Below the pieces are notes generated by a model. The model saw nothing but the letters and a program-made list of their open reading frames with translations. It did not search any database and was not told the DNA's origin. Made by a program: the position numbers and the translations under genes. From Paraphysomonas bandaiensis (taxonomy: Eukaryota; Protista; Chrysophyceae), in contig CBFFRP010000039.1 of assembly GCA_965644295.1 (NCBI GenBank), positions 1 to 64,000 of the forward strand: a stretch of DNA of 64,000 bases, given 5' to 3'. The stretch's first letter is position 1. Each line of letters begins with the position of its first letter. Positions 16,291 through 32,147 of the stretch are shown in pieces.

Positions 16291-16690
16291 TAAGATATTA
16301 TGATTATTATCGCTCAACACTATCCATGTGATGCTTCAAATAAAAGGGTGTATATTTCTAATTAGTTTGCCAACATTTCGGTAGCAGTATGCTATCCACC
16401 TGTCAAAATATTCTTGTGACTCAATATAGCAGCTTAAAAATTGAGGTGACACAAGTGAGGTACAATGGAAAACATATTGAAATAATTTCGATTGTTGCTA
16501 CAATTGACGGATTTGTTATATCACTTGAAGAGGGCTACGAATCTACAAAACTATCACCTGTACAGCGTACATATATATCTGGTTTCCGTGCTGCAGTAGA
16601 AAAGTTACGACACTGCGCATTGCTTCCGTACGACCACTTCCGCATTACTATCTTTCATATTATCCCATTCTCCCGTTGACTCCCCATTAT

Positions 16691-19600
16691 TCATCCCCAC
16701 CCAACACTGGCAGCACCCCATGAGTTCAAAGATTGGTTAGAAACAGTTCTACTTGTTGAACTTTTCTCCACATTATCCAATGAGCTTCCTCTAACATCGC
16801 TCTTACCTTTGCTGGTTTGTCCAAGGGGCGAAAAACGCGACTGCTTTCGCTCGTGAAACTTCTCACTGGTGCGTACAGAACCCGGAACTGTTGAATAAGG
16901 ACTAACAATTGACCCATCATGCGATCCACTTCCACCCCATCCGCTACTAGCAGCACCCCATGTGGCTGATTTCGATGAACCACGAGTATCACTCTCGACA
17001 TTTCTGTCTCGTGAGTTCACATGAAAATGGGGTTCTGTCGACCCTTCCGTATCATCCTTCCTCCTCGTTGAGTACGACCGCTCACCAGATGAACTCCTAT
17101 CATGACTGGGAGAATCACGTCTGCGTCTCTTCTCATATCGACTACTATCCATTACTGATGAAGCAACAGTCGACGCCCTGCTGCCATACCCACCCTGTGA
17201 CCCACTTCCACCCCATCCGCTACTAGCAGCACCCCATGTGGCTGATTTCGATGAACCACGAGTATCACTCTCGACATTTCTGTCTCGTGAGTTCACATGA
17301 AAATGGGGTTCTGTCGACCCTTCCGTATCATCCTTCCTCCTCGTTGAGTACGACCGCTCACCAGATGAACTCCTATCATGACTGGGAGAATCACGTCTGC
17401 GTCTCTTCTCATATCGACTACTATCCATTACTGATGAAGCAACAGTCGACGCCCTGCTGCCATACCCACCCTGTGACCCACTTCCACCCCATCCGCTACT
17501 AGCAGCACCCCATGTGGCTGATTTCGATGAACCACGAGTATCACTCTCGACATTTCTGTCTCGTGAGTTCACATGAAAATAGGGTTCTGTCGACCCTTCC
17601 GTATCATCCTTCCTCCTCGTTGAGTACGACCGCTCACCAGATGAACTCCTATCATGACTGGGAGAATCACGTCTTCGTCTCTTCTCATATCGACTACTAT
17701 CCATTACTGATGAAGCAACAGTCGACGCCCTGCTGCCATACCCACCCTGTGACCCACTTCCACCCCATCCGCTACTAGCAGCACCCCATGTGGCTGATTT
17801 CGATGAACCACGAGTATCACTCTCGACATTTCTGTCTCGTGAGTTCACTTGAAAATAGGGTTCTGTCGACCCTTCCGTATCATCCTTCCTCCTCGTTGAG
17901 TACGACCGCTCACCAGATGAACTCCTATCATGACTGGGAGAATCACGTCTGCGTCTCTTCTCATATCGACTACTATCCATTACTGATGAAGCAACAGTCG
18001 ACGCCCTGCTGCCATACCCACCCTGTGACCCACTTCCACCCCATCCGCTACTAGCAGCACCCCATGTGGCTGATTTCGATGAACCACGAGTATCACTCTC
18101 GACATTTCTGTCTCGTGAGTTCACATGAAAATGGGGTTCTGTCGACCCTTCCGTATCATCCTTCCTCCTCGTTGAGTACGACCGCTCACCAGATGAACTC
18201 CTATCATGACTGGGAGAATCACGTCTGCGTCTCTTCTCATATCGACTACTATCCATTACTGATGAAGCAACAGTCGACGCCCTGCTGCCATACCCACCCT
18301 GTGACCCACTTCCACCCCATCCGCTACTAGCAGCACCCCATGTGGCTGATTTCGATGAACCACGAGTATCACTCTCGACATTTCTGTCTCGTGAGTTCAC
18401 ATGAAAATGGGGTTCTGTCGACCCTTCCGTATCATCCTTCCTCCTCGTTGAGTACGACCGCTCACCAGATGAACTCCTATCATGACTGGGAGAATCAAGT
18501 ATTCGGTCTATATTCTGCGTACTTCGAGAGGATCCCCTTTCACTGCTAACAGATACTAAGTGTGTTGTACTTTTCCCGGCGGTATTATGGTCTGTGACCC
18601 TCTTGTCGACAGAATCAGCTCCCCATCCCTTGCTATGTCCCCCCCACCCCGACTGTGTGCTAGGTGTGGATTGCTTTGTCGCATAAGTTTTGCCTTTATC
18701 AAGAAAGCGAGTGTCAACACTTCTGGGTAACGAAGTTCCGTTTCTGCTAGTATTCAGAGTCGAGTACGAGTTATGACCCCAGTTGGTACTGACATCTCCC
18801 CAACTTTTGCTTTCGGATTCTCGTGAAGTAGAAAGGGATGTCAGTTCATGTGGAGAAGTATTTTCAAACGTGGAATCGCCGCCATCCAGATCGTGAACTT
18901 TGCCTGATGCAAAGCGACGATTCACATTCATGTAGCGTTGCTCAGTACCACTTCCACCAATGGGGTCCATAGTGTTATCGATTCCGGTATGTCTATCACT
19001 AGGTTGTCTTGTTGTGGATAATGGGCCACTTCGTTCAATCGCAGCATGCCCACTCGACAAAGAGTCTCCAGTACTATGCTGTGGAATTCGGCCATCCACA
19101 CGTTGTGTCTTCGGAAAAATATCTTCTATAAGAGATCGGAAGAAAGGTAGATCTGGATGGCCCTCGTTTAGAAAATCAACCCATTCCCCTTGCGGTTTCT
19201 TTTGGTTGCGAGCGATTAGCTTTTTTATAAATGTGTCACAATCTTTATTGACAACCGCTCCGCTGGCAATCGCATCGCGCAATTTGAATGCCTTTCTACA
19301 GATTGCTGACAGGGGACCCTCTTCATTCTCTGCCATTTCAATGAATCCGAAGAGCCAGCGCCCATTTTCGCGTGTTCTGAACATAGCGTCATATACACTG
19401 ACTACTTCAGGTGGAAGAATACGAATTAGCTGGGGAGCCATGAGATACATCTGTGACAAGGTATCACATAATGGACAGATACATGTAAAACCCATACCAT
19501 ACGCTCGTCTTTGTTGCTGCTACCTATGGAAAACGGACATATCATGGGATTTTCTTCAGTCCTCGTATTCGCGCACAAAGAACTGAACAAAAGTTGAAAA

Positions 19601-22600
19601 AATTTCAAACATTAACTTAACCAGTGTGCACCTGTACAGCGATCCAGTCATGTCTGTACCGTAATCGGGTCGACAATTCCCGCGCTTCACACACACTCCA
19701 ATTGGCACCAATTTAATCCCATTAAGTGCTTTTTTCTCTTTGAGGTCTCTGTACACGTTCCGGGAGCATCGTATTTGTTTCTATATTTCGTTAATATGTA
19801 GTACATACTGATTACAACTTCCTACAAACCTGCATATAGCACATATCTGCAAGTACTCCCTCCGTGGTGAGATCTGGACTGAACGCATTGCAGTAAAGCC
19901 AATTCTTTGCATCACCGGTCTTATAATACAACGCAAATTCTCCTTTCTTATATTTAGTATATATCAGCTCCGACTTATCTGCAAGCAGAGTTAGTAAAGT
20001 TGCACAACTCAAATTGCAGTCAATACCAATTGGGACAGCGGGATACGGTTTCACAAGGTGTAGATGTGGAGCTCCTAAGGGGTTGGAAGGTTTGCCAAAT
20101 GAGGACAAGGCCTGGTTTATCGCTCGAGAGGTTGATTCTGATACATTTGATGCCGTATCTACAGGATCCCTCTGATGATAGCGTGAGGACAAAGCTGCAC
20201 AAAGTGATTGGACCTACCATCAATGTGGAGATGTTCTGAAGAGGACGAGGGGCTCTATCTAATGATTCCCCGATTGAACTCGAAACAGGTAGCTCTCCAA
20301 TGCTGGTAGGTTCCGGCGCAGAAACAGCTTGAGAAGGAAGTCTAGAGGCCTTTTCCGCTTGCTGTGGCTTCAACGCAGCACGAGGTGATCTGACGGGGGG
20401 TTCTATTAAATCAACATCAACAACAATGTCTGGTAATGGGGAAACGCTTCGAGGATTCAGCTTTTCTTGAAATTCGATGCGAGTAGCTGTCGAAGAGCTC
20501 TTTCCGTCACGCCAAGTCTCCCCACTCCCTGTACTAAATCAGACCAACTCGGAATACATACCACGGGGCCAATACAACTTACCTGCCTCCCGCCGTTTCG
20601 CTTCCAAGAGTGCCTGGGTGCTCTCACCAAGTGCAGCTCTCTCCCGTTCTGACTCTTGCGCCGTCTTTTCCCTCTCCTCGCGAACCTGCGAAATTCCAGT
20701 TTCAAAATAGATATTGGAAATAGATTCCGAATATACCGCAGGGCTGGCAAAAAAATCCGTGGGCTTCACAAGCAACTGGTCAAACTTTAGTTCACTGGCC
20801 AAAAGCATTAAAACCTACGTTCTCGCGTTGTCAGGGAGTTGTATGTCATCATGATATCATACCTTATCGTAGTTGTGCGGTTGCTTGAATATCTTCAAGT
20901 ACTTTCGACAAATCGTGATGTAGTTCGATGAAGTATGCTTCTGCGCATTAACATGAGCGTGAATCGTGGACTCCACATTATACGCTAATATGACGGCGCT
21001 TGCATTCGCACACGGAATTCCCAAGTGCATTAGCGCAGTCAAAAACCCCTCCTTAAAACAACACCGAATTCTGACTCGGGTATCTTTTTCAGTTTTCCCA
21101 TCATTCGTTAACACGCTTTTGTTAGGAATATTATCATCTTCAGGCATGAGCACCGATGCTGATACCCGTGGCAAGTTTCCAGCAACAGAATCTGAGTGGT
21201 TGGTTCGGTCTTCCGCTTTCCTCGAAAACATCAAATTATGCAGGTCCTCCCCCTGAAAACGCTCATCTGCCCATTCAGATCGATAGACACGAATATCCTT
21301 CGCTTTAATTCCACTCCCATTCCACTCAGAGGAATCACTAGAAACAGCTAACAGTTTCCTATTAAAACAACAGTCACGCCTCTGCATATAAACTTCTGGC
21401 ACGTAACATGAACATTCACATTTTCTAATATATACTACCACCAAATATCATAGACGAAGCATGAAACTACTAAAATCAAAAGTAGAGCACCTGACCGAAA
21501 CGCACCTGTATTCAAGTAAGCTATCCAACAGATTGCCTGTAGCTGAGGCCATACATTTCTCAGTGCAATAGTCTGAGTCTGGCGACCGCATATACTTGTC
21601 AACAATGCACACACCGCCTTCAACGAATTGTATGCGATACCTATCTTGTGATGTCGCAGATACAGATGTCGGTGACTTGTTCCCCTTCGAGGCTTGAGAC
21701 GGTTTCGTAGATTTACGGTCCAAAGATGATATTTTCGACACTTTCCTCGATGTGGCTGACTTCTCATTCAGCTTACTTTTACTGCTCCTAGTAGTATCAA
21801 CGCTATGATCACTGTGAAATAATACGCACAGTACATAAAAAGGTTAGATATTACCTCGACTTCTCATGCTTCGAAAGCTGCCGCTGCGTTGTCGTACCGG
21901 ATATCTTTTCAACACTATAACTGACAAGCTGTATCACACAAGAGCGAATAAAACATTGCAGTTATGCATACTTTTCGTTTATCACTTTACTATGTTCAGT
22001 GAGAGTTTCGTCGCCATTTTCCTCGCTGTCGCTTAAGAGATCAATACACTCTTCTGCGGATCCGTGGTAATTCCTGGAATTATCGATTTCCATTTCCTCG
22101 TCAGATTCATCTTCTCCTTTATTTAACCGTTCAAGCAGAGACTGTAGATCCTGCAAGAACGATGTATGTGGCAATAACTTGAGTGAGTCATACTCGCCGA
22201 TTAAATATTCCAAAACTGCAGTATCTCTGCATCTTCTCTTCTTGTCCAGGGCAGCACGAGCCCCTCCTATCCACTCATCTGTCTGGGAGAGGGCGTCAAA
22301 CAGATCAGTCGCACACGTAAAATAAGGACTCAGAGATTTGTTCATGACATATCGTTCAGAATCTCCCGCATCTGGGTCTTTGATAAACACTCCACGAGAT
22401 AGTAGCTGTGGAGCATACTTCGGGGATATATCACGAACAAGTGACCGCCCAGATGCCAGTTTTTGACGACACATATCGACACTAATTATAGAACCCCTAT
22501 CTTGATGACCTTGAACCATTTTTATTGCATTTTCAGGAAAAGCAATGATCCACTCAAGTACAGCAACCATCCATTCCAACACCGTAGTACACATAGCCAT

Positions 22601-25600
22601 CACAGGAAGCCCCTCCAAGCGCTCCTGCAATAATAATACCTCTACTTTGTGCAGCTCGAGGGCATATCGCCCAAAGTATTCCTGTTCAACGTCTTCTGCA
22701 TCACTACCCTTGCTCTCGGAAAATCCATTTGACTCCCACGGCAAAAAAAGTAGTTTCGTCATTTCTTGTTCACAATGAATAGCCGTAGAGTGAATGTCAA
22801 GAAAAGTATCGTATGACGGAGGCTGAATATACAAAGTGAGCATATACAGTCAAGAAAGAACTCGTATGCTATGATACAGTAGTGTTGTAAATATTTCGTT
22901 ATTGTATGCGCTTACGTGTAATATCACTGCAATTGGCTCTGACATCAGATTTTCATAGTCTTCAAGAGAATATTTCTTGTGAGTTTTCTTCAGCTGGGTG
23001 CGAGTACTAATCTTTGGCAAAACAGCCTTCGCATTACTTATCCACTCTTTCGCTGCCAAGAAGATTCGGTCGACCTCAGCGGCCCAATCGTTCCATATCA
23101 TGCCCGTGTTCACTACAGAGATGACAACATTAGCACAATATTACCAAAATATAATACTTGAGCCAAACAATCCAATATACATTACACTTCCACCATATAC
23201 CCACACCAGAATTAAAAGAGTACACATCCCACTCACATATGAAGTTGCTTTGATGTAATGCAGTTCTTATGTCCTGAAATCTTTCCCAGGGAAGTAAGTT
23301 TGGCTCACATTCATTCGGCCTGCACAATAGTGCCATAAAAGCAGGAGCATTACCAGCAATGTCATCTAGAATTTTCATCGTTTTCAACATTGCAGTTAAC
23401 TTTTCGTCAACCTGGGGAAGTGCGAATATGACGTTAGCAATACTGACCGTACTCAGGTTAATATCCGTTGAACTACCACGAGGTACCACTCGCCCACTTG
23501 AGTCTCCAATCTTATCACGTATAGCGAGCGCCTTAGAGAAGAGAGGAGATACCTCTTCATGCAGTGCGACCGTAACTTCCAAAAGAATTTCAGTCCTGGA
23601 CATACTTTCACTTTCAGCCATATATCTACTATTCATCTCTTGAATTCGAGATTCTATCGAACAAAACAAAGCTGTAATATCACCAAGAAGAGTAGACGTT
23701 GCATCGATCGCTGACGTTAGATGCATGAATATTCGACTTGAATAAGGTTGGATGTTCTCCATGTACTGTGAATCAGGAGACCACGCTGCTCTCATATCCT
23801 CAGCATCAGAAAGAGGAGCACGATATAAAAGTAGCAAAAGCGTGCGGGTTGCTAACAAATACGCTCTACATTGGGCCTACAAACCAAAATACACGAATCA
23901 ATCAAGAACATGACACCAAAAATCTAAATGTCAGTACTACATACTATAATTATACATATATACATTCACATTTGACAGTCGTGTGTACATGATGCTTGTA
24001 CCGTGCAATGCTCCGTATCATTTATAGTTGACTTCGAGAACATGAAATCCCTATCCCCTAGATCGCTCGCTGCTTTAGGCAACACAAACTGCTCAAGACT
24101 GACACAACTCGTTTCGAGCTCGTCACACAAATCAGAAACACTCTTGAGGTCTATAGTCGTCATAGTTGATCCCATATCCTCATTAACTCCACTGGAAACG
24201 TAGTGGCTAATAAACTCGACAATACGAGGCAACAAAGTGTTAAGTGTGCCTTGATGCATCCACACATCATAAGCCCTGCATTACACATATAAATACAGAG
24301 GTGAATAAGGAATTGAATTGCACACCTTACTAGAGAATCTGACAGACGTTTCGTAAATGGCAGATGTCTCATACATTTCACAGTCGCAGAAAGTGTACGC
24401 GGACACTCAAGAACTCGTGACGCTACATCGACAAGAGATTCCTCGGAGTATGGCCCAGCGCTCAATCTCATTTCAACTAGTGAAGCCTTTCGTTGAAGCT
24501 CAGCAGCCTCCAATAGCAAACTATCATCATTGGCCAATGCCTGGGTGGATGAATGGTGAACTTATGCAATAATAACACACATTTTGAACATGACACTTCA
24601 ACCCCATAACTTTACGATTTGACAGAGGATCACGTTTTTATGCACACTACAAGTCCGACAATCTCGCTACAACCGTACCTGATATTCTCGAACGGAGAGT
24701 ACTGCAGCATTCATATCTTCTGCAGTACAGGCATTCCCATCACGACACTTGTGTACCATGTCCCGCAAAGCTGTCCGCAATGAATCTCGCTCTTGACATT
24801 TAGTCTTCAATTTTGCTAAACTATACATAAGCACATTAGTATTTACTTCTTAAAGTTTATTCAATGACTATATATATGAAATACATCAACGCAACCGTCA
24901 GTGATACTCAAGATTACCTCTCTGTTAGGAACGTAGAAATCGCTTGTGTAGCTGGAAAGGTTCTAGAAATCTGAAACGAATACATAACACACCGCAATAA
25001 GTATGACTTGATACGAGACGAACCGGGTCAGAAAGAATTATACTGTGTTTCTGTGTGATGGCATCCACATCTATGGAATCTAGGTTCACCCCTAACTCTT
25101 GCATCTCTTCCACAAGACCACATGAGCGCTGCAATAATATGAACCATCACAGGAACAGTGTACACGGTACGCGTATAAACACACCTCCAGGTACAATAAA
25201 CCTCTTTCTTCTCTGGTAACTAAGCCTAGTTCATGAAGTGTGTGTATAGTTCGTGATATACTGTTCTTCCAAGCAAGCACAAAGCTGTCGCACATATTGA
25301 CATTAGAAAGTGCTAAACAATAAACGTCTAAATCGCAATTTCAACCTAAACGCTACAACAGAGCGCGCGTAGGAAACAATACAAATAAAATACAGAGAAG
25401 TTCGCGCGGGTCCTACTTGCCTGGCATCGTCCGTTAATAGGAGTTTTTTTACGTCATCAGCCTCCCTACTGCAGTTGGCAAGTTCATACATATCTGATAT
25501 CTTTCTTCTGATATCATTGCACTCGTCACTGTAGATATCATTATTGAATACCCTTCCAAGAAATATTTCTGCATCTTCAAAAAGAATGCGATTCATTGAG

Positions 25601-27554
25601 GTATTACTCATGTCACACTGAGTGAATCTTGAAATATCTTCCAGATTATGGAGAATACAGTGAAGGTCGATTTCCATATCGATGTGAACTTGGCAGACTT
25701 CGACCTGCAAATTTTAATGGGATACAATATAGGAGAATCAGATTATCCAATAAATAGGCCATATGAATAACTGCAACAAAAATCTCATATGTCGCTAATC
25801 CTACCTTTTTTATAAGATTCCTGATGTTTGGTATGCTTTCTTCATTTAAACCCGCTAAACTCCGAATTTTCTCCACTAGACTTTCCCACTCTCGTTGAGT
25901 TTCCAGAAGATCAGATATCAGAGACGGCCGTATTGCAAAACCTGCAATACCAGAATTCAGTCACATTGACTCTAAAATTTCTTGGGTGACAGTCAAACCA
26001 TTGCACCACATGCAGTCAAGTAGAACAGCTGGAGTGATCTGTTCTCCAAATATGTTGGTTATACATATATACATATACAAATTCCATGCAAAACGCTGAC
26101 GAGTCGGTCAAAAATCTACCGCTAGCAATATGCGCACCTTCACCCTTTTTTAGCAATGCTATAATATCTTCTTCGCTTAGCTTATCGGCGAGTACTGCCC
26201 GCGTTCGCACGAAAAATACATTCAGATCATTCACCTCACTGTTGAGTGCTTTAACAGCACACTCGAAGCACTGCATCAGCTGTTGTACGCAATCTTCAGA
26301 GGTCGTAGATTTGAGAATTGATTTACCAGTGTTGACATGTGGGTCCAACTGTCCATATGATACCTCCCCAATGAGTGCCTGTATTAAAAGTAAACAATCG
26401 GCAAAACGTTTGCTATCTATATGACCTCTTTGAGGTCTCTCAACCACTCTGTCACGAGAACAAAAACCTCACAGCTCTCCAAAAAGTCAGGAGGTGGGAT
26501 CAGGCCCTCTGCCTCAGAAACCACACTATTCAGCTCATCAGAGATATTTGTTAGCATATCTAAGTTGGCAGCACTGAGGAGGTCGCCATTTGTAATAACA
26601 CTACAGAGAGGTCCCAATGTTTTCCTACAAACCGTTCGCATATCATCCTCAGCTTCAGTGGTTGCCACGGAACATTCCTGCAAGTATTTCAGGAGCCATT
26701 AGCATAATTATAAATAATACTCTGGTCTAAGTAGCATAATCATGTAAAACGAATGAAAGAGTATTCAGTATTGCGTATGCAACGGCATGACATATAGTCG
26801 TCCATACCTCCAATCTGTTCCACCACGTAGACAAGAGTTCGTTCAACATATACGTATCATCACGCCAAATCTCTTGGTCGTCACTTTTACAAGAAAAAAA
26901 TAATTCAAGAACAGCTAAAGCGTCATCAATGTCTGAAATCCGCAATTTGACCGCGCCATTATCATCCGAGTCCAACAGATCGATAACAGGACACACTTTC
27001 TCTTCAATCGCCGCCAGAATCTCCAATAATCTCGACGCACGATCCTTACCAGTTGAATGAATATCCTTTTCGTAATTTTCTTTCCTAGTCTTATCATCCA
27101 TTGTGCCTTCTAAACAAAATTTGCAGTGGTAATCACTGTCTTCGTCCAGTGCAGGTACATCTCCAATGCAACTATGGTGATACCAGCCATGACAGTCCAT
27201 GCACATGATCATGTCGTCTTTCTTCACACCATACAGCGTTTTACATATACAAAACACGGGTTCCTGGAAGTGTTTCTGACATTCGTATATGAGTGCATCA
27301 TTGTCGTCAAGAAAGAGCAGGCCTTTTCTACTTGCACACTTCGGGTGGGCATTGCTAGTGCAGTTGGGATTGCTACATGCAATGAATATACCCTCCTCGC
27401 TGTTACACTGAAAATGACAGAGATTTTCAGACCTGTTGGCGTGAGTCCACTGGCACCTGCTGCCAGGCCTCGAGGTGAAAAACTTCTTCAATCTATGCCA
27501 CATCAGGCTACTGGATTGAATTTTTTTGGCTCGAGTTCGTGATAGTGACTCCAT
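16691..27554 (-). CDS. Large multi-exon PHD-finger / TFIIS-M / SPOC-like protein (PHF3/DIDO/Bye1-like) with WG-repeat C-terminal tail
   Basis: N-terminal extended-PHD plus PHD (CIC...MIMCMDCHGWYHHSCIG...CKFC); long helical region; DIDO-like Cys motif RSPDSDYCTEKC; TFIIS-M-like YITICRKYLKIFKQPHNYDK|VLMLLASELKFDQLL..FFAS; SPOC-like segment ~20080-19330; terminal exon with 92-aa repeats. Exon chain is consistent where traced (3' half); single-gene continuity through 22-26.7 kb not fully verified. Confidence 0.7.
16926..18497. repeat. 276-bp coding tandem repeat, ~5.7 near-identical copies
   Basis: Period 276 (shadow ORFs at 16960, 17236, 17512, 17788, 18064, 18340); in frame on the minus strand, each unit containing TWGAASSGWGG. 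Confidence 0.98.
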
Positions 27555-28869: not shown

Positions 28870-30237
28870 TCAATCCCATAGAACAAGGTGTCCTCTTTCA
28901 ACTAACTTCTGAATTGCTTCCTTTAAGTTGTCTACATCGAATTTAGCATTATGTTGATTCATTATCTTCTGACCAGTGGCATGTTCGTAGAGTTCCTTTA
29001 GCGACGGATTCTTCCTTCGACCCCATTTATTTTTGCTTTTTACGATAAGTTTAGTGGCATGCATAGTACATATAGGCTCAAGAGCAGAAAATTCATTGAG
29101 TAGATCTTCCATACCCCTGCGGTACAATTCACTCTTGGTAGCTGAAACATCGAAGCGTGCATTATGTGCTATGACATGAGTAGCTCCCTCACATGCCTGC
29201 ATCATTTGTCGAAAGGCAGAGGCAAATTCTATGCCCGAAGATACCGCCGACTCGTGAGTTATTCCATGAAATTCGGCATTATCAATAATAAACCCGTTTG
29301 GCTTTATAACAAAATCGCCCGATACTACTTCCTCAAATGTTTTCTTGTCACAGACCATATAACCCAGCTGAACGATGCGACAAGAGTCGTACTTTTCAGT
29401 CATTTTATAATCTGCAGAGTCACTTTTATCATCTTTACGCTTTTTAGGCAAGCCAGTAGTTTCCACATCATAAAAAACGACATGAGGGCCACTTTTTCGT
29501 CCTAAAACTTTTGGCATAATGAAAACATCGGCATCATTCCGCATTTTCATACTAGTGTCATTAGGCAGGTTGGAATCTAACGCGTTTTCGTCAACATGCA
29601 ACGACGGCTTATTTTTGGGCATCCACCGCATAAATAGCTCCCGATCCGCATCACCAGGGATAAACCACGCTTTCACAGCATAATCCCACTTGGCTCCATG
29701 TAGTTTGGCCTCACTCTTTTCCTCGTACGGCACTTCTATATATTGTTTTCTCCAGGCACTAAATTTAGATATATCAGCTTCATAGGGAATGTACCACCTT
29801 CTCGATTTCATATCCCAGCGAGCGCCACACTTCTTAGCTTCATCACGCTGTTCATACGGTACATGGATATACTCTCGTACTCGCCAAGGGTCTAACTGTC
29901 CAGTTGCAGTAATATCATTCTGGGCATACCATCGCCGTTTCTCTCCGTCAAACATACCACCTCTTTCCTTAACACAGTCTTTATCTGAATATGGAACAAC
30001 TAAGTACTCCCGGGTCAATTTCCATCTTTCGAATTCTTCTGGATAGCCCACTGCATTGACATTAACAAACCACATCTCTAAAAGAGGGTCCCACTGGGCA
30101 CCCAATGAACTCACACGCGCACTCTCATACGATGGTACGTCCAAATATCGAAAAGGGCTGTTGAGCCCGCTAGAAACAAACATACGAGGGACTGTAAGCA
30201 ACTGGAGGGTTCTGCGGCAGTGCATCATAAGAGCCAT
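28870..30237 (-). CDS. 4x DUF5710-like repeats + DEDDh 3'-5' exonuclease, intronless, possible organellar presequence
   Basis: Four YxxVPYxxxxxAKxxGAxWD..W(Y/F) repeats; ExoI YDVETTGLP, ExoII HNARFD, ExoIII HNAKFD. First in-frame ATG at 30237 (MALMMHCRRTLQLLTVPRMFVSS). Confidence 0.85.
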   Translation of the reverse strand: MALMMHCRRTLQLLTVPRMFVSSGLNSPFRYLDVPSYESARVSSLGAQWDPLLEMWFVNVNAVGYPEEFERWKLTREYLVVPYSDKDCVKERGGMFDGEKRRWYAQNDITATGQLDPWRVREYIHVPYEQRDEAKKCGARWDMKSRRWYIPYEADISKFSAWRKQYIEVPYEEKSEAKLHGAKWDYAVKAWFIPGDADRELFMRWMPKNKPSLHVDENALDSNLPNDTSMKMRNDADVFIMPKVLGRKSGPHVVFYDVETTGLPKKRKDDKSDSADYKMTEKYDSCRIVQLGYMVCDKKTFEEVVSGDFVIKPNGFIIDNAEFHGITHESAVSSGIEFASAFRQMMQACEGATHVIAHNARFDVSATKSELYRRGMEDLLNEFSALEPICTMHATKLIVKSKNKWGRRKNPSLKELYEHATGQKIMNQHNAKFDVDNLKEAIQKLVERGHLVLWD

Positions 30238-30749
30238 CGCGAATAGCACAGACGATGAAAAAATCTTCAACTTTATCCGTGGCCCTCTTATGACAGAAGG
30301 CGAGTCTATTTTTAGATATCAGGACTCGGAATTCCTACTTCATCATCATGATAACAGTCCATCACCAATCAGCAGCAATCCAATCAGCAGTATACAAAGT
30401 AGTATAGTATGGTAGTGCAGGGTGTGTAGAGCAGGCATACAGCAGTGCCTATCCAGTTATGTAGTGTACATACAGCAGCGTATACCAGGTGGTATACAGT
30501 GGCAACTGTGTTCAAATTTTGAATGGGATCCATGTCGAGTACAATACTGCTGCACTGTACTGTACGTATACCGGTATACACCGCATCAGTGGAAACCAAG
30601 CATGCTGTACAAAATCCCCATTTTTCAGTTCTCAGAGTGCTGTAAATATCGCCATATGTAGAGCGAACTACAGCACTCGTAGTGATGATCATCATCTTAA
30701 GAAGCCCATCGAGCATGATGATTTCTGCTCTTTGTATTGTTGAGGTGTG

Positions 30750-32147
30750 ATGGAGGCTCCGTATGCTGTTTATTTCACAGGAGGAACAGCTCTACAAGAC
30801 ACCGCATCTGCGATGGGGTTTACTGACTACATGCACGAGCACAGTGGAGGGGAAGGCATCATAGCGCACACCAAGTCCGTTCATATTGTTACATGTTTTG
30901 ATTCGGGTGGAAGCTCTGCGATATTGCGTCAAACTGTGCCGGGTTTACCAGCAGTGGGGGATATCCGGAACCGTATCTGCAGTATTGCTGAGGGTCGCCT
31001 AAGAGCATTGGATGCTGTGGATCCTAGTGCCAAGTCTCTATCTCCACTGAGACTCGTGAGATTTTTTCATCATAGGCTCCCATCCCCAGAGCAGTGTGTT
31101 ATTTCTGGCATTACGAATGTAGATCTTAGGAATACACTGGAGATGATTTCACACTGTTCTAGAATTAGTTTGGAATCGGGAATACAATACGATGGATATG
31201 AAATTGAACTTAATGCAGTGACTTTAGTTGATCACTTGCAGAATCTACTTGTCGGAGTTCCACATTCCACCCTCATTGAATGTCTCTCGCTCCTTTCTGT
31301 ATTCCTGAAGGAGGTACCCTGTTTCGATTTCGCTGGAGCTTCTCTAGGAAATCTGATTCTCACAGGTGCCTACTTGTCACAGGATAATAATAGATGCCTT
31401 GCTTATGCTGTACGAATAGTACGAGAAATGATGGGCATACCAGAATTAGTGCTCCCATGTTCTGTTTCCTCCTGTACTCTAGGCGCCCGTTTATTAAATT
31501 CTCGAGTTGTAATGGGCCAGCACCGCATTACATCTCCTAAGGGATCGTTAGCAGGTATTGAATCACCGATCGACGACTTGTTTCTTGTTAACTATGCGGG
31601 ATTGGACCAGTCTATCCCATCACCAGACGAAGTTAGCGTGGAGTGCAAATCCTGTGCAAGTGCACTCCCGGAAGTCCTGGTGGCGATTGGTTCGGCAAGT
31701 CTGCTATGCTACCCTATAGGAAGCTTCTACACAAGCCTTCTTGCGTGCCTTCTTGCTGATGATATAGCCTCTACTATATTCAACAATGTCACGGCCAAGA
31801 AGGTATTCGTTCCGAACATGATCAGAGATACGGAGTCTTTGGGGATGAAGTTGCACGATTTAGTTCGCACGTTATGTGCTTTTTTAACCAACCAATGTGT
31901 GGATAAAACGTGCAAACCTTCAGATTTTGTATCTGTGGTGTTACTTGACTCTACTTGTGAATATGACAGCTATGGAGGAATTAAGTGCGAAAGTGTTGAA
32001 ATTATTAGGGATGACTTGGGGATTAGTGTTTGGCAGGCGGATATATGTCGTCAAGAGAAAAAGGGTGGTGCTTTTATATTAGACCCCGTAAAATTTCTCT
32101 CTGTCATTGACAAATTGGCAAGTAAACCAATATCAAGTGTATTGTAG
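30750..32147 (+). CDS. CofD/YvcK (UPF0052) family protein, GAK-system-like, intronless
   Basis: FTGGTA, VTCFDSGGSS..LR, PAVGDIRNR, FDFAGASLGNLILTGAYL, GQHRIT, CYPIGSFYTSLLACLL, KVFVPN..DTESLG. Confidence 0.85.
   Translation: MEAPYAVYFTGGTALQDTASAMGFTDYMHEHSGGEGIIAHTKSVHIVTCFDSGGSSAILRQTVPGLPAVGDIRNRICSIAEGRLRALDAVDPSAKSLSPLRLVRFFHHRLPSPEQCVISGITNVDLRNTLEMISHCSRISLESGIQYDGYEIELNAVTLVDHLQNLLVGVPHSTLIECLSLLSVFLKEVPCFDFAGASLGNLILTGAYLSQDNNRCLAYAVRIVREMMGIPELVLPCSVSSCTLGARLLNSRVVMGQHRITSPKGSLAGIESPIDDLFLVNYAGLDQSIPSPDEVSVECKSCASALPEVLVAIGSASLLCYPIGSFYTSLLACLLADDIASTIFNNVTAKKVFVPNMIRDTESLGMKLHDLVRTLCAFLTNQCVDKTCKPSDFVSVVLLDSTCEYDSYGGIKCESVEIIRDDLGISVWQADICRQEKKGGAFILDPVKFLSVIDKLASKPISSVL

Follow-up and report, generated by a model that had tools for sequence, protein, structure and literature searches.

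The gene at positions 16691..27554 (minus strand) of the window, the 64,000-nt stretch of contig CBFFRP010000039.1 from the chrysophyte Paraphysomonas bandaiensis that was analysed here, is real, expressed and unusual: its protein ends in a disordered tail in which all 18 tryptophans are followed by glycine (WG). It may encode a divergent member of the TLD-SPOC family (Bye1, PHF3, DIDO, BORDER) that gained a C-terminal Argonaute (Ago) hook, a reading to which we give about an even chance of being correct. Little is known of how small RNAs reach chromatin in stramenopiles and other protists, and this gene is a concrete candidate adaptor.

Gene structure and the WG tail

The gene was modelled with 25 exons and a coding sequence of 8,895 nt, encoding 2,964 aa. 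Its introns comprise 23 with GT-AG and one with GC-AG ends; 15 are seen in RNA contigs, one is supported by a loose contig end and eight upstream ones are predicted. The RNA contigs, X1 (7,134 nt) and X2 (7,208 nt), come from two public runs, and each aligns as a single record over 18560-24543. As both skip 15 introns at GT-AG ends, a contamination of the RNA runs by DNA was rejected. A loose contig end maps onto the next exon at 24682, which anchors the 16th intron. Between 24540 and the stop, the spliced frame runs without interruption over 2,271 codons. In each of the two runs a single contig joins the exons of a TFIIS-M-like (TLD) and a SPOC-like part to the first four WG, which rules out that tail and TLD exons lie on separate transcripts. 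The unaligned upstream remainders of the contigs measure 2,097 and 2,174 nt, and the nine predicted upstream exons, which keep one frame from an ATG at 27554 and include one GC-AG intron, total 2,079 nt. As the leftover length fits these exons, the exon encoding the PHD fingers is very probably part of the same RNA as the tail. The location of all domains on one polypeptide is accordingly direct for 24682-18560 and by length for exons 1-9, and the single transcript assumed in the preliminary description is supported, between 24682 and the fourth WG by the contigs themselves and for the PHD exon by the length fit. Part of the gene is also present in marine metatranscriptomes.

Three single-base differences common to X1 and X2 (19884, 23296 and 23571) are probably alleles or strain differences. 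Predicted intron 5 (25285-25420, minus strand) needs a GC donor (AG/GCAAGT) with a good GC-AG consensus.

The last open reading frame (ORF; 16691-19495, minus strand) contains 20 tryptophans, of which the first two (WL and WV) belong to folded sequence and the distal 18 are all WG: four ahead of a tandem array, 12 inside it and two at the C-terminus, reading GWG-stop. The count, its 4/12/2 split and the GWG end had been given exactly in the preliminary description, which missed the spacing. The 18 tryptophans form nine pairs with a distance of exactly 7 residues between the two members. Both the WG and this spacing are kept in four independent pair sequences, while the intervening residues differ. 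For Ago hooks, such conservation of WG among varying neighbours has been described (PMC2910046). Of the 288 tryptophans in 61 other long ORFs of the genome, just 12 (about 4%) are followed by glycine, and upstream of the tail of the same protein this is the case for none of 25. A search of the 62.6-Mb genome with a DNA pattern for a GWG-terminated pair gave 16 matches; half of these belong to this gene, and the eight elsewhere do not lie in comparable WG-rich frames. The tail consists of 23% serine and 12% glycine, contains no cysteine and only 3% leucine, isoleucine and methionine together, and exhibits 35 RS/SR dipeptides.

Two unique WG pairs (W2262/W2269 and W2314/W2321; 18611..18832, minus strand) are present on the spliced RNA contig. 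They are followed by an in-frame array of 276 nt (92 aa) repeated 5.7 times with 99% identity according to TRF (16912..18497, minus strand), in which each unit includes one WG pair and a spacer rich in arginine, serine, aspartate and glutamate. Such spacers break up the platform, leaving separate islets, whereas plant hooks are continuous. Each of the five full units closes with a basic run of five residues that resembles a nuclear localization signal. The terminal pair (W2956/W2963) and the stop codon occupy 16691..16822 (minus strand). For scoring, the dos score was re-implemented from Table 1 of PMC2910046 (Karlowski 2010), with its Arabidopsis-fitted cut-off of 6.99 half-bits. Nine separate islets of 19-43 aa with two tryptophans each were obtained, all above this cut-off (12.9-32.0): 12.9 and 18.2 for the unique pairs, 28-32 per array pair and 13.7 for the terminal pair. 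Six islets, with scores of 28-32, exceed the best of 404 background ORFs (19.6). The tail also fits the idea of "three or more motifs" applied to plant hooks (PMC10991848), and by sequence criteria it is a predicted Ago hook.

In principle, the WG count could have arisen accidentally when the repeat recently expanded, or from a faulty assembly, with a tail that is neutral or not translated as modelled. The array copies are 99% identical and known from the assembly, and the stop adjoins a run of G. However, six WG lie outside the array, four of these on spliced RNA, and with the array collapsed to one copy 8/8 WG remain, where at least six WG occur in only 2.5e-5 of composition-preserving shuffles. 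Copies 3 and 4 carry three and one private changes, respectively. Both X1 and X2 end 25-28 nt inside the array, which is to be expected, as RNA with several copies would presumably branch the assembly graph at this point. We therefore regard such an artefact as very improbable.

At the stop (16590-16700, minus strand), one extra base in the G run would make the protein about 30 aa longer. A basic-Ser-Arg-Phe-Ser motif, which recalls short motifs of RNA-processing proteins, occurs near the C-terminus of the tail (16820-16850, minus strand) and of SPT6 (contig C419).

Domains upstream of the tail

The PHD fingers of the preliminary description are confirmed. Pfam finds an extended PHD of the zf-HC5HC2H type (aa 36-95; 27270..27449, minus strand; PF13771 E 2e-6, PF13832 E 4e-6) followed by a PHD finger of the class reading trimethylated lysine 4 of histone H3 (H3K4me3; aa 99-147; 27114..27260, minus strand; PF00628 E 3e-5), both in exon 1. 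The best PDB matches of the latter are PHF2, PHF8, BPTF, ING2 and TAF3, and the TLD-SPOC protein PPS from Drosophila matches at E 0.007. F101, Y108, M115 and W124, which we take to be the H3K4me3 cage positions, are all kept. Fragments like a broken second PHD (25942-26119, minus strand) are located within predicted intron 3, with a Cys-x2-Cys and, in a different frame, a W-x-C-x2-C end, possibly a decayed or alternatively spliced exon.

Domain searches and structure models were run exon by exon. Exons 2-14 (21972..26677, minus strand) encode about 1,150 aa with a hydrophobic fraction of 0.3-0.4 that appear folded and are probably helical, a region between the PHDs and the TFIIS-M-like part which had been missed before. 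No Pfam match was obtained in the exons scanned, and PLU-1-type helical repeats are resembled by eye only. The cysteine motif that had been called DIDO-like is present at 21553..21609 (minus strand) as judged from the sequence, with no tool support. It contains only three cysteines (C1506, C1520 and C1524), one short of the DIDO/Spp1 motif, and its likeness to DIDO is presumed.

A TFIIS-M-like domain is suggested for exons 17-19 (approximately aa 1620-1765; 20583..21117, minus strand). Pfam gave no TFIIS-M match, and the single-sequence model of 20863-21117 is poor (pLDDT 50). With this model, a Foldseek search among 350,542 chains put TFIIS domain II of human PHF3 (2dme) at the top in probability and TM-score and in second place in E-value (2.8). 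VIA aligned the model with 2dme over 73 residues (Z 5.2, root-mean-square deviation 3.9), in register with the domain start and at 18-19% identity. This match counts at all because the TFIIS-M domain had been named beforehand. Its E-value is below significance, the KIX domain of Gal11 scores as well, and a wider structure search did not include the PHF3 domain among its best 50 rows. BLASTP gave no alignment to the TFIIS exon of this genome, and a viral scan detected no TFIIS-M sequences. As the three TFIIS_M matches of the genome all sit in TFIIS-type genes, this gene is the only TLD-SPOC candidate seen. These TFIIS-type genes are located on C143, C301 and C375; the C301 and C375 matches score identically, and the C301 copy adjoins a copia-like integrase fragment.

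The SPOC-like segment (exons 22-25, approximately aa 1918-2085; 19330..19978, minus strand), whose splicing is seen in RNA, was placed by its position after the TLD and by a strand pattern seen by eye. The SPOC domain is a seven-stranded barrel; Pfam and PDB searches over the four exons of just 28-49 aa were blank. A single-sequence model of the SPOC end together with the SURP-like part that follows was unusable (pLDDT 41). A fold search of the Atlas yielded nothing specific. For R1248, the phosphoserine-binding arginine of PHF3, a glutamine or lysine appears possible as counterpart by eye, which is unreliable. Of the two folds that had been proposed, TFIIS-M is thus suggestive, whereas SPOC was unconfirmed by any tool. 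Behind the SPOC-like part lies a weak, previously overlooked SURP-like helical segment (19124..19234, minus strand; PF01805 E 0.022, with 15.2 bits against a cut-off of 21.1).

These results leave room for a true Ago hook on a front unrelated to TLD-SPOC proteins, namely a PHD scaffold specific to this lineage that would unite chromatin reader and hook in the manner of plant NERD and make no direct contact to RNA polymerase II (Pol II). The lack of a Pfam TFIIS_M or SPOC match by any route, the non-significant structural match and the 1,150-aa insert, which is absent from known TLD-SPOC proteins, are in line with such a scaffold. Nevertheless, a domain predicted in advance came second of 350,542 chains, and the order of PHD, Cys motif, TLD and SPOC-like segment is that of the TLD-SPOC family. 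This family has representatives in every major clade of eukaryotes (PMC10111866), and the genome yielded no further candidate. We consider a NERD-like scaffold improbable and membership in the TLD-SPOC family probable.

Argonautes and silencing genes in the genome

An Argonaute partner, which the preliminary description presupposed, is available. Two Argonaute genes (contigs C119 and C212) were found, both of the AGO clade and closer to human AGO2 than to PIWI; for C119 the values are E 9e-52 against AGO2 and E 2e-28 against PIWI. Catalytic residues are visible. Both proteins are distant from known Argonautes, with the nearest database relatives being 34-43% identical over most of the PIWI part, and the two of these that were looked up originate from public marine-type samples. 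Of the residues that line the Trp pockets of human AGO2, F587 and F653 are kept in both, while P590, Y654 and K660 are changed. Variation of the Argonaute Trp pockets outside animals is documented (PMC12477606).

The genome also encodes a Dicer-like protein (1,695-aa frame with two RNase III domains in tandem), two RNA-dependent RNA polymerases and a Pre-SET/SET protein. One of the polymerase genes (contig C355) sits in a 2,752-aa open frame. The largest Pol II subunit, RPB1, exhibits 15 canonical heptads in its C-terminal domain (CTD) in the part read. As there are only three largest-subunit genes, no Pol IV or Pol V appears to be present. No WG was found on RPB1 or downstream of the SH2 domain of SPT6, which had been located through SH2_2 after an HHH_7 match was rejected as Tex/SRBD1-like. 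As there is no Pol IV/V-type subunit and no WG at these two sites, the protein described here would be the available polymerase-linked hook. The only C5-methylase match is DNMT2-like and none of DNMT1/3 type was found, although a divergent DNMT5 could be missed. For this reason the proposed analogy to SPOCD1 and DNA methylation fits poorly. A pathway like RNA-directed DNA methylation was rejected as well, in view of the missing Pol IV/V subunits and DRM/DNMT3-type methylase.

Instead of an Argonaute, the WG tail of a TLD-SPOC elongation factor might bind another partner, such as CCR4-NOT or a splicing factor, or provide aromatic stickers in a region that is rich in RS/RD and forms condensates, comparable to the unstructured extensions at the C-termini of DIDO3 and PHF3. 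In the family, the SPOC domain is commonly followed by a long disordered tail, which in DIDO has a role in splicing (PMC12139180), and the tail described here, with its RS/SR dipeptides, comes after a weak SURP-like segment. Trp motifs of GW182 bind CCR4-NOT too, and hooks may drive phase separation (PMC10991848); the divergent Trp pockets point in the same direction. Yet neither an invariant glycine after tryptophan nor a constant distance of 7 residues is required for stickers; the islets fit the composition matrix of Ago hooks, and the genome contains a full set of RNA interference genes. A tail with a non-Argonaute partner therefore appears unlikely to us.

Several further observations weigh against a TLD-SPOC protein with an Ago hook, alongside the non-significant PHF3 match, the SPOC-like segment that no tool confirmed and the partly changed pockets. 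A reader of H3K4me3 implies active, not silent, chromatin. The dos cut-off is loose and weak when taken alone, as 32 of 102 background seeds also pass it. The islets do not fuse into a single long WG domain, arginine amounts to 11.5% of the tail vs. 4.4% in plant hooks, and 12 of the 18 WG derive from one recent expansion. Moreover, no orthologue was found in any search (queries with the last exon and the PHD exon; two metagenome scans), two feature searches of the ESM Atlas returned no homologue and no paralogue was found in the same genome. These blanks do not show absence, as the length window excludes a relative of 2,964 aa and records of this genome may be missing from the set searched. 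Four representative-library matches were unrelated repeat proteins and judged spurious.

If the protein is a TLD-SPOC member with an Ago hook, its PHD would, as its kept cage suggests, bind H3K4me3 at active promoters. For Bye1, binding to both H3K4me3 and Pol II has been reported (PMC4100922). From the family, the TFIIS-M-like domain would be expected to dock on the Pol II jaw and the SPOC-like segment on or near the CTD, with the assignment of these domains only partly confirmed here. Motif, composition and the presence of Argonautes suggest that the nine Trp pairs on short Gly/Ser islets of the disordered tail may form a multivalent platform for AGO-clade Argonaute loaded with small interfering RNA. 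We infer every binding step in this scheme. Speculatively, the Argonaute could scan transcripts while Pol II is making them. Matching RNA, such as that of a transposon that has just become active, could then prompt co-transcriptional slicing or termination and histone-based silencing by an enzyme of the SUV39/G9a type, not DNA methylation. The protein would then be a polymerase-tethered Ago hook invented independently outside plants, fungi and animals, with one chain reading H3K4me3, riding Pol II via TFIIS-M and SPOC and keeping Argonautes at nascent RNA. As a counterpart, in a single protein, of the fission yeast RNA-induced transcriptional silencing complex (RITS) and plant SPT6L, it would initiate silencing at active chromatin with no involvement of Pol V or DNA methylation. 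It would also be the second recruitment of a TLD-SPOC protein to small-RNA silencing after SPOCD1. We put this broader proposal forward tentatively, with a chance somewhat below even. It offers a model for how silencing first starts on an actively transcribed transposon.

Next to the gene, 28870-30270 (minus strand) encodes four DUF5710 repeats and a DEDDh exonuclease according to Pfam. An intron-free frame at 30744-32144 (plus strand) contains a domain of the CofD/UPF0052 family (E 2e-25), which is mostly known from prokaryotes.

Comparison with known systems

All major clades of eukaryotes contain TLD-SPOC proteins, most of which have an N-terminal PHD (PMC10111866), and long unstructured tails are frequent among them (PMC12139180). 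With yeast Bye1, human PHF3 and DIDO, Drosophila PPS and plant BORDER (PMC10111866, PMC12139180, PMC4100922) the protein described here appears to share the order of PHD, TFIIS-M-like domain, SPOC-like segment and long disordered tail. The PHD is likewise of the H3K4me3 class, and this genome has a heptad CTD. It differs by the additional extended PHD, the 1,150-aa insert, the SURP-like segment and the 18-WG tail. A WG/GW hook in TLD-SPOC members is mentioned neither in PMC10111866 nor in PMC12139180, and no TLD-SPOC gene is included in the WG/GW list for Arabidopsis (PMC2910046). A literature search, which covered few subscription journals, found no work joining the SPOC domain with a GW motif and Argonaute or, among the papers listed, an Ago hook with TLD-SPOC proteins.

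Mammalian SPOCD1 combines TFIIS-M and SPOC in the service of small-RNA-guided transposon silencing (PMC8490990, PMC10111866), much as is proposed here. However, SPOCD1 has no PHD and no described WG tail, and its partners are the PIWI-clade MIWI2 and DNMT3, whereas here the Argonautes are of the AGO clade and no DNMT1/3-type match was found. Chp1 of fission yeast carries a SPOC domain as well. Together with Tas3 and Ago1 it forms RITS, in which, as proposed here, a chromatin reader, a GW hook and an Argonaute act on nascent RNA in histone-based silencing (PMC8490990). Unlike the single chain described here, RITS distributes reader and hook over two chains, reads H3K9me by a chromodomain and contains no TFIIS-M. 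In brown algae, genome searches found no homologue of GW182, Tas3 or Chp1 (PMC4513859).

The closest parallels to the hook itself are found in plants. NERD contains SWIB, Plus3, CCCH and GYF domains. This Arabidopsis protein combines a PHD finger and GW repeats on one chain and binds both histone H3 and AGO2 (PMC7544125). It is, in contrast to the protein described here, not a TLD-SPOC protein and feeds DNA methylation. SPT6L/GTB1, SPT5L/KTF1 and NRPE1 carry WG repeats at the C-terminus of a polymerase-linked protein (PMC10991848, PMC7544125), and in basal streptophyte algae SPT6L equips the Pol II machinery with a hook in the absence of Pol V and DRM, the situation that is proposed here. Scaffold and lineage are unrelated, and the nine two-Trp islets with arginine-rich spacers differ from the one continuous platform of these plant proteins. 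As plants put Ago hooks on SPT5L, SPT6L and the PHD protein NERD (PMC10991848, PMC7544125), the system is less new in principle than the preliminary description had supposed, hooks on elongation factors being known; scaffold, paired-islet design and lineage do appear new. If the proposed function is correct, Ago hooks would have been grafted repeatedly onto Pol II elongation factors, namely onto SPT5, onto SPT6 and now onto a Bye1/PHF3 protein.

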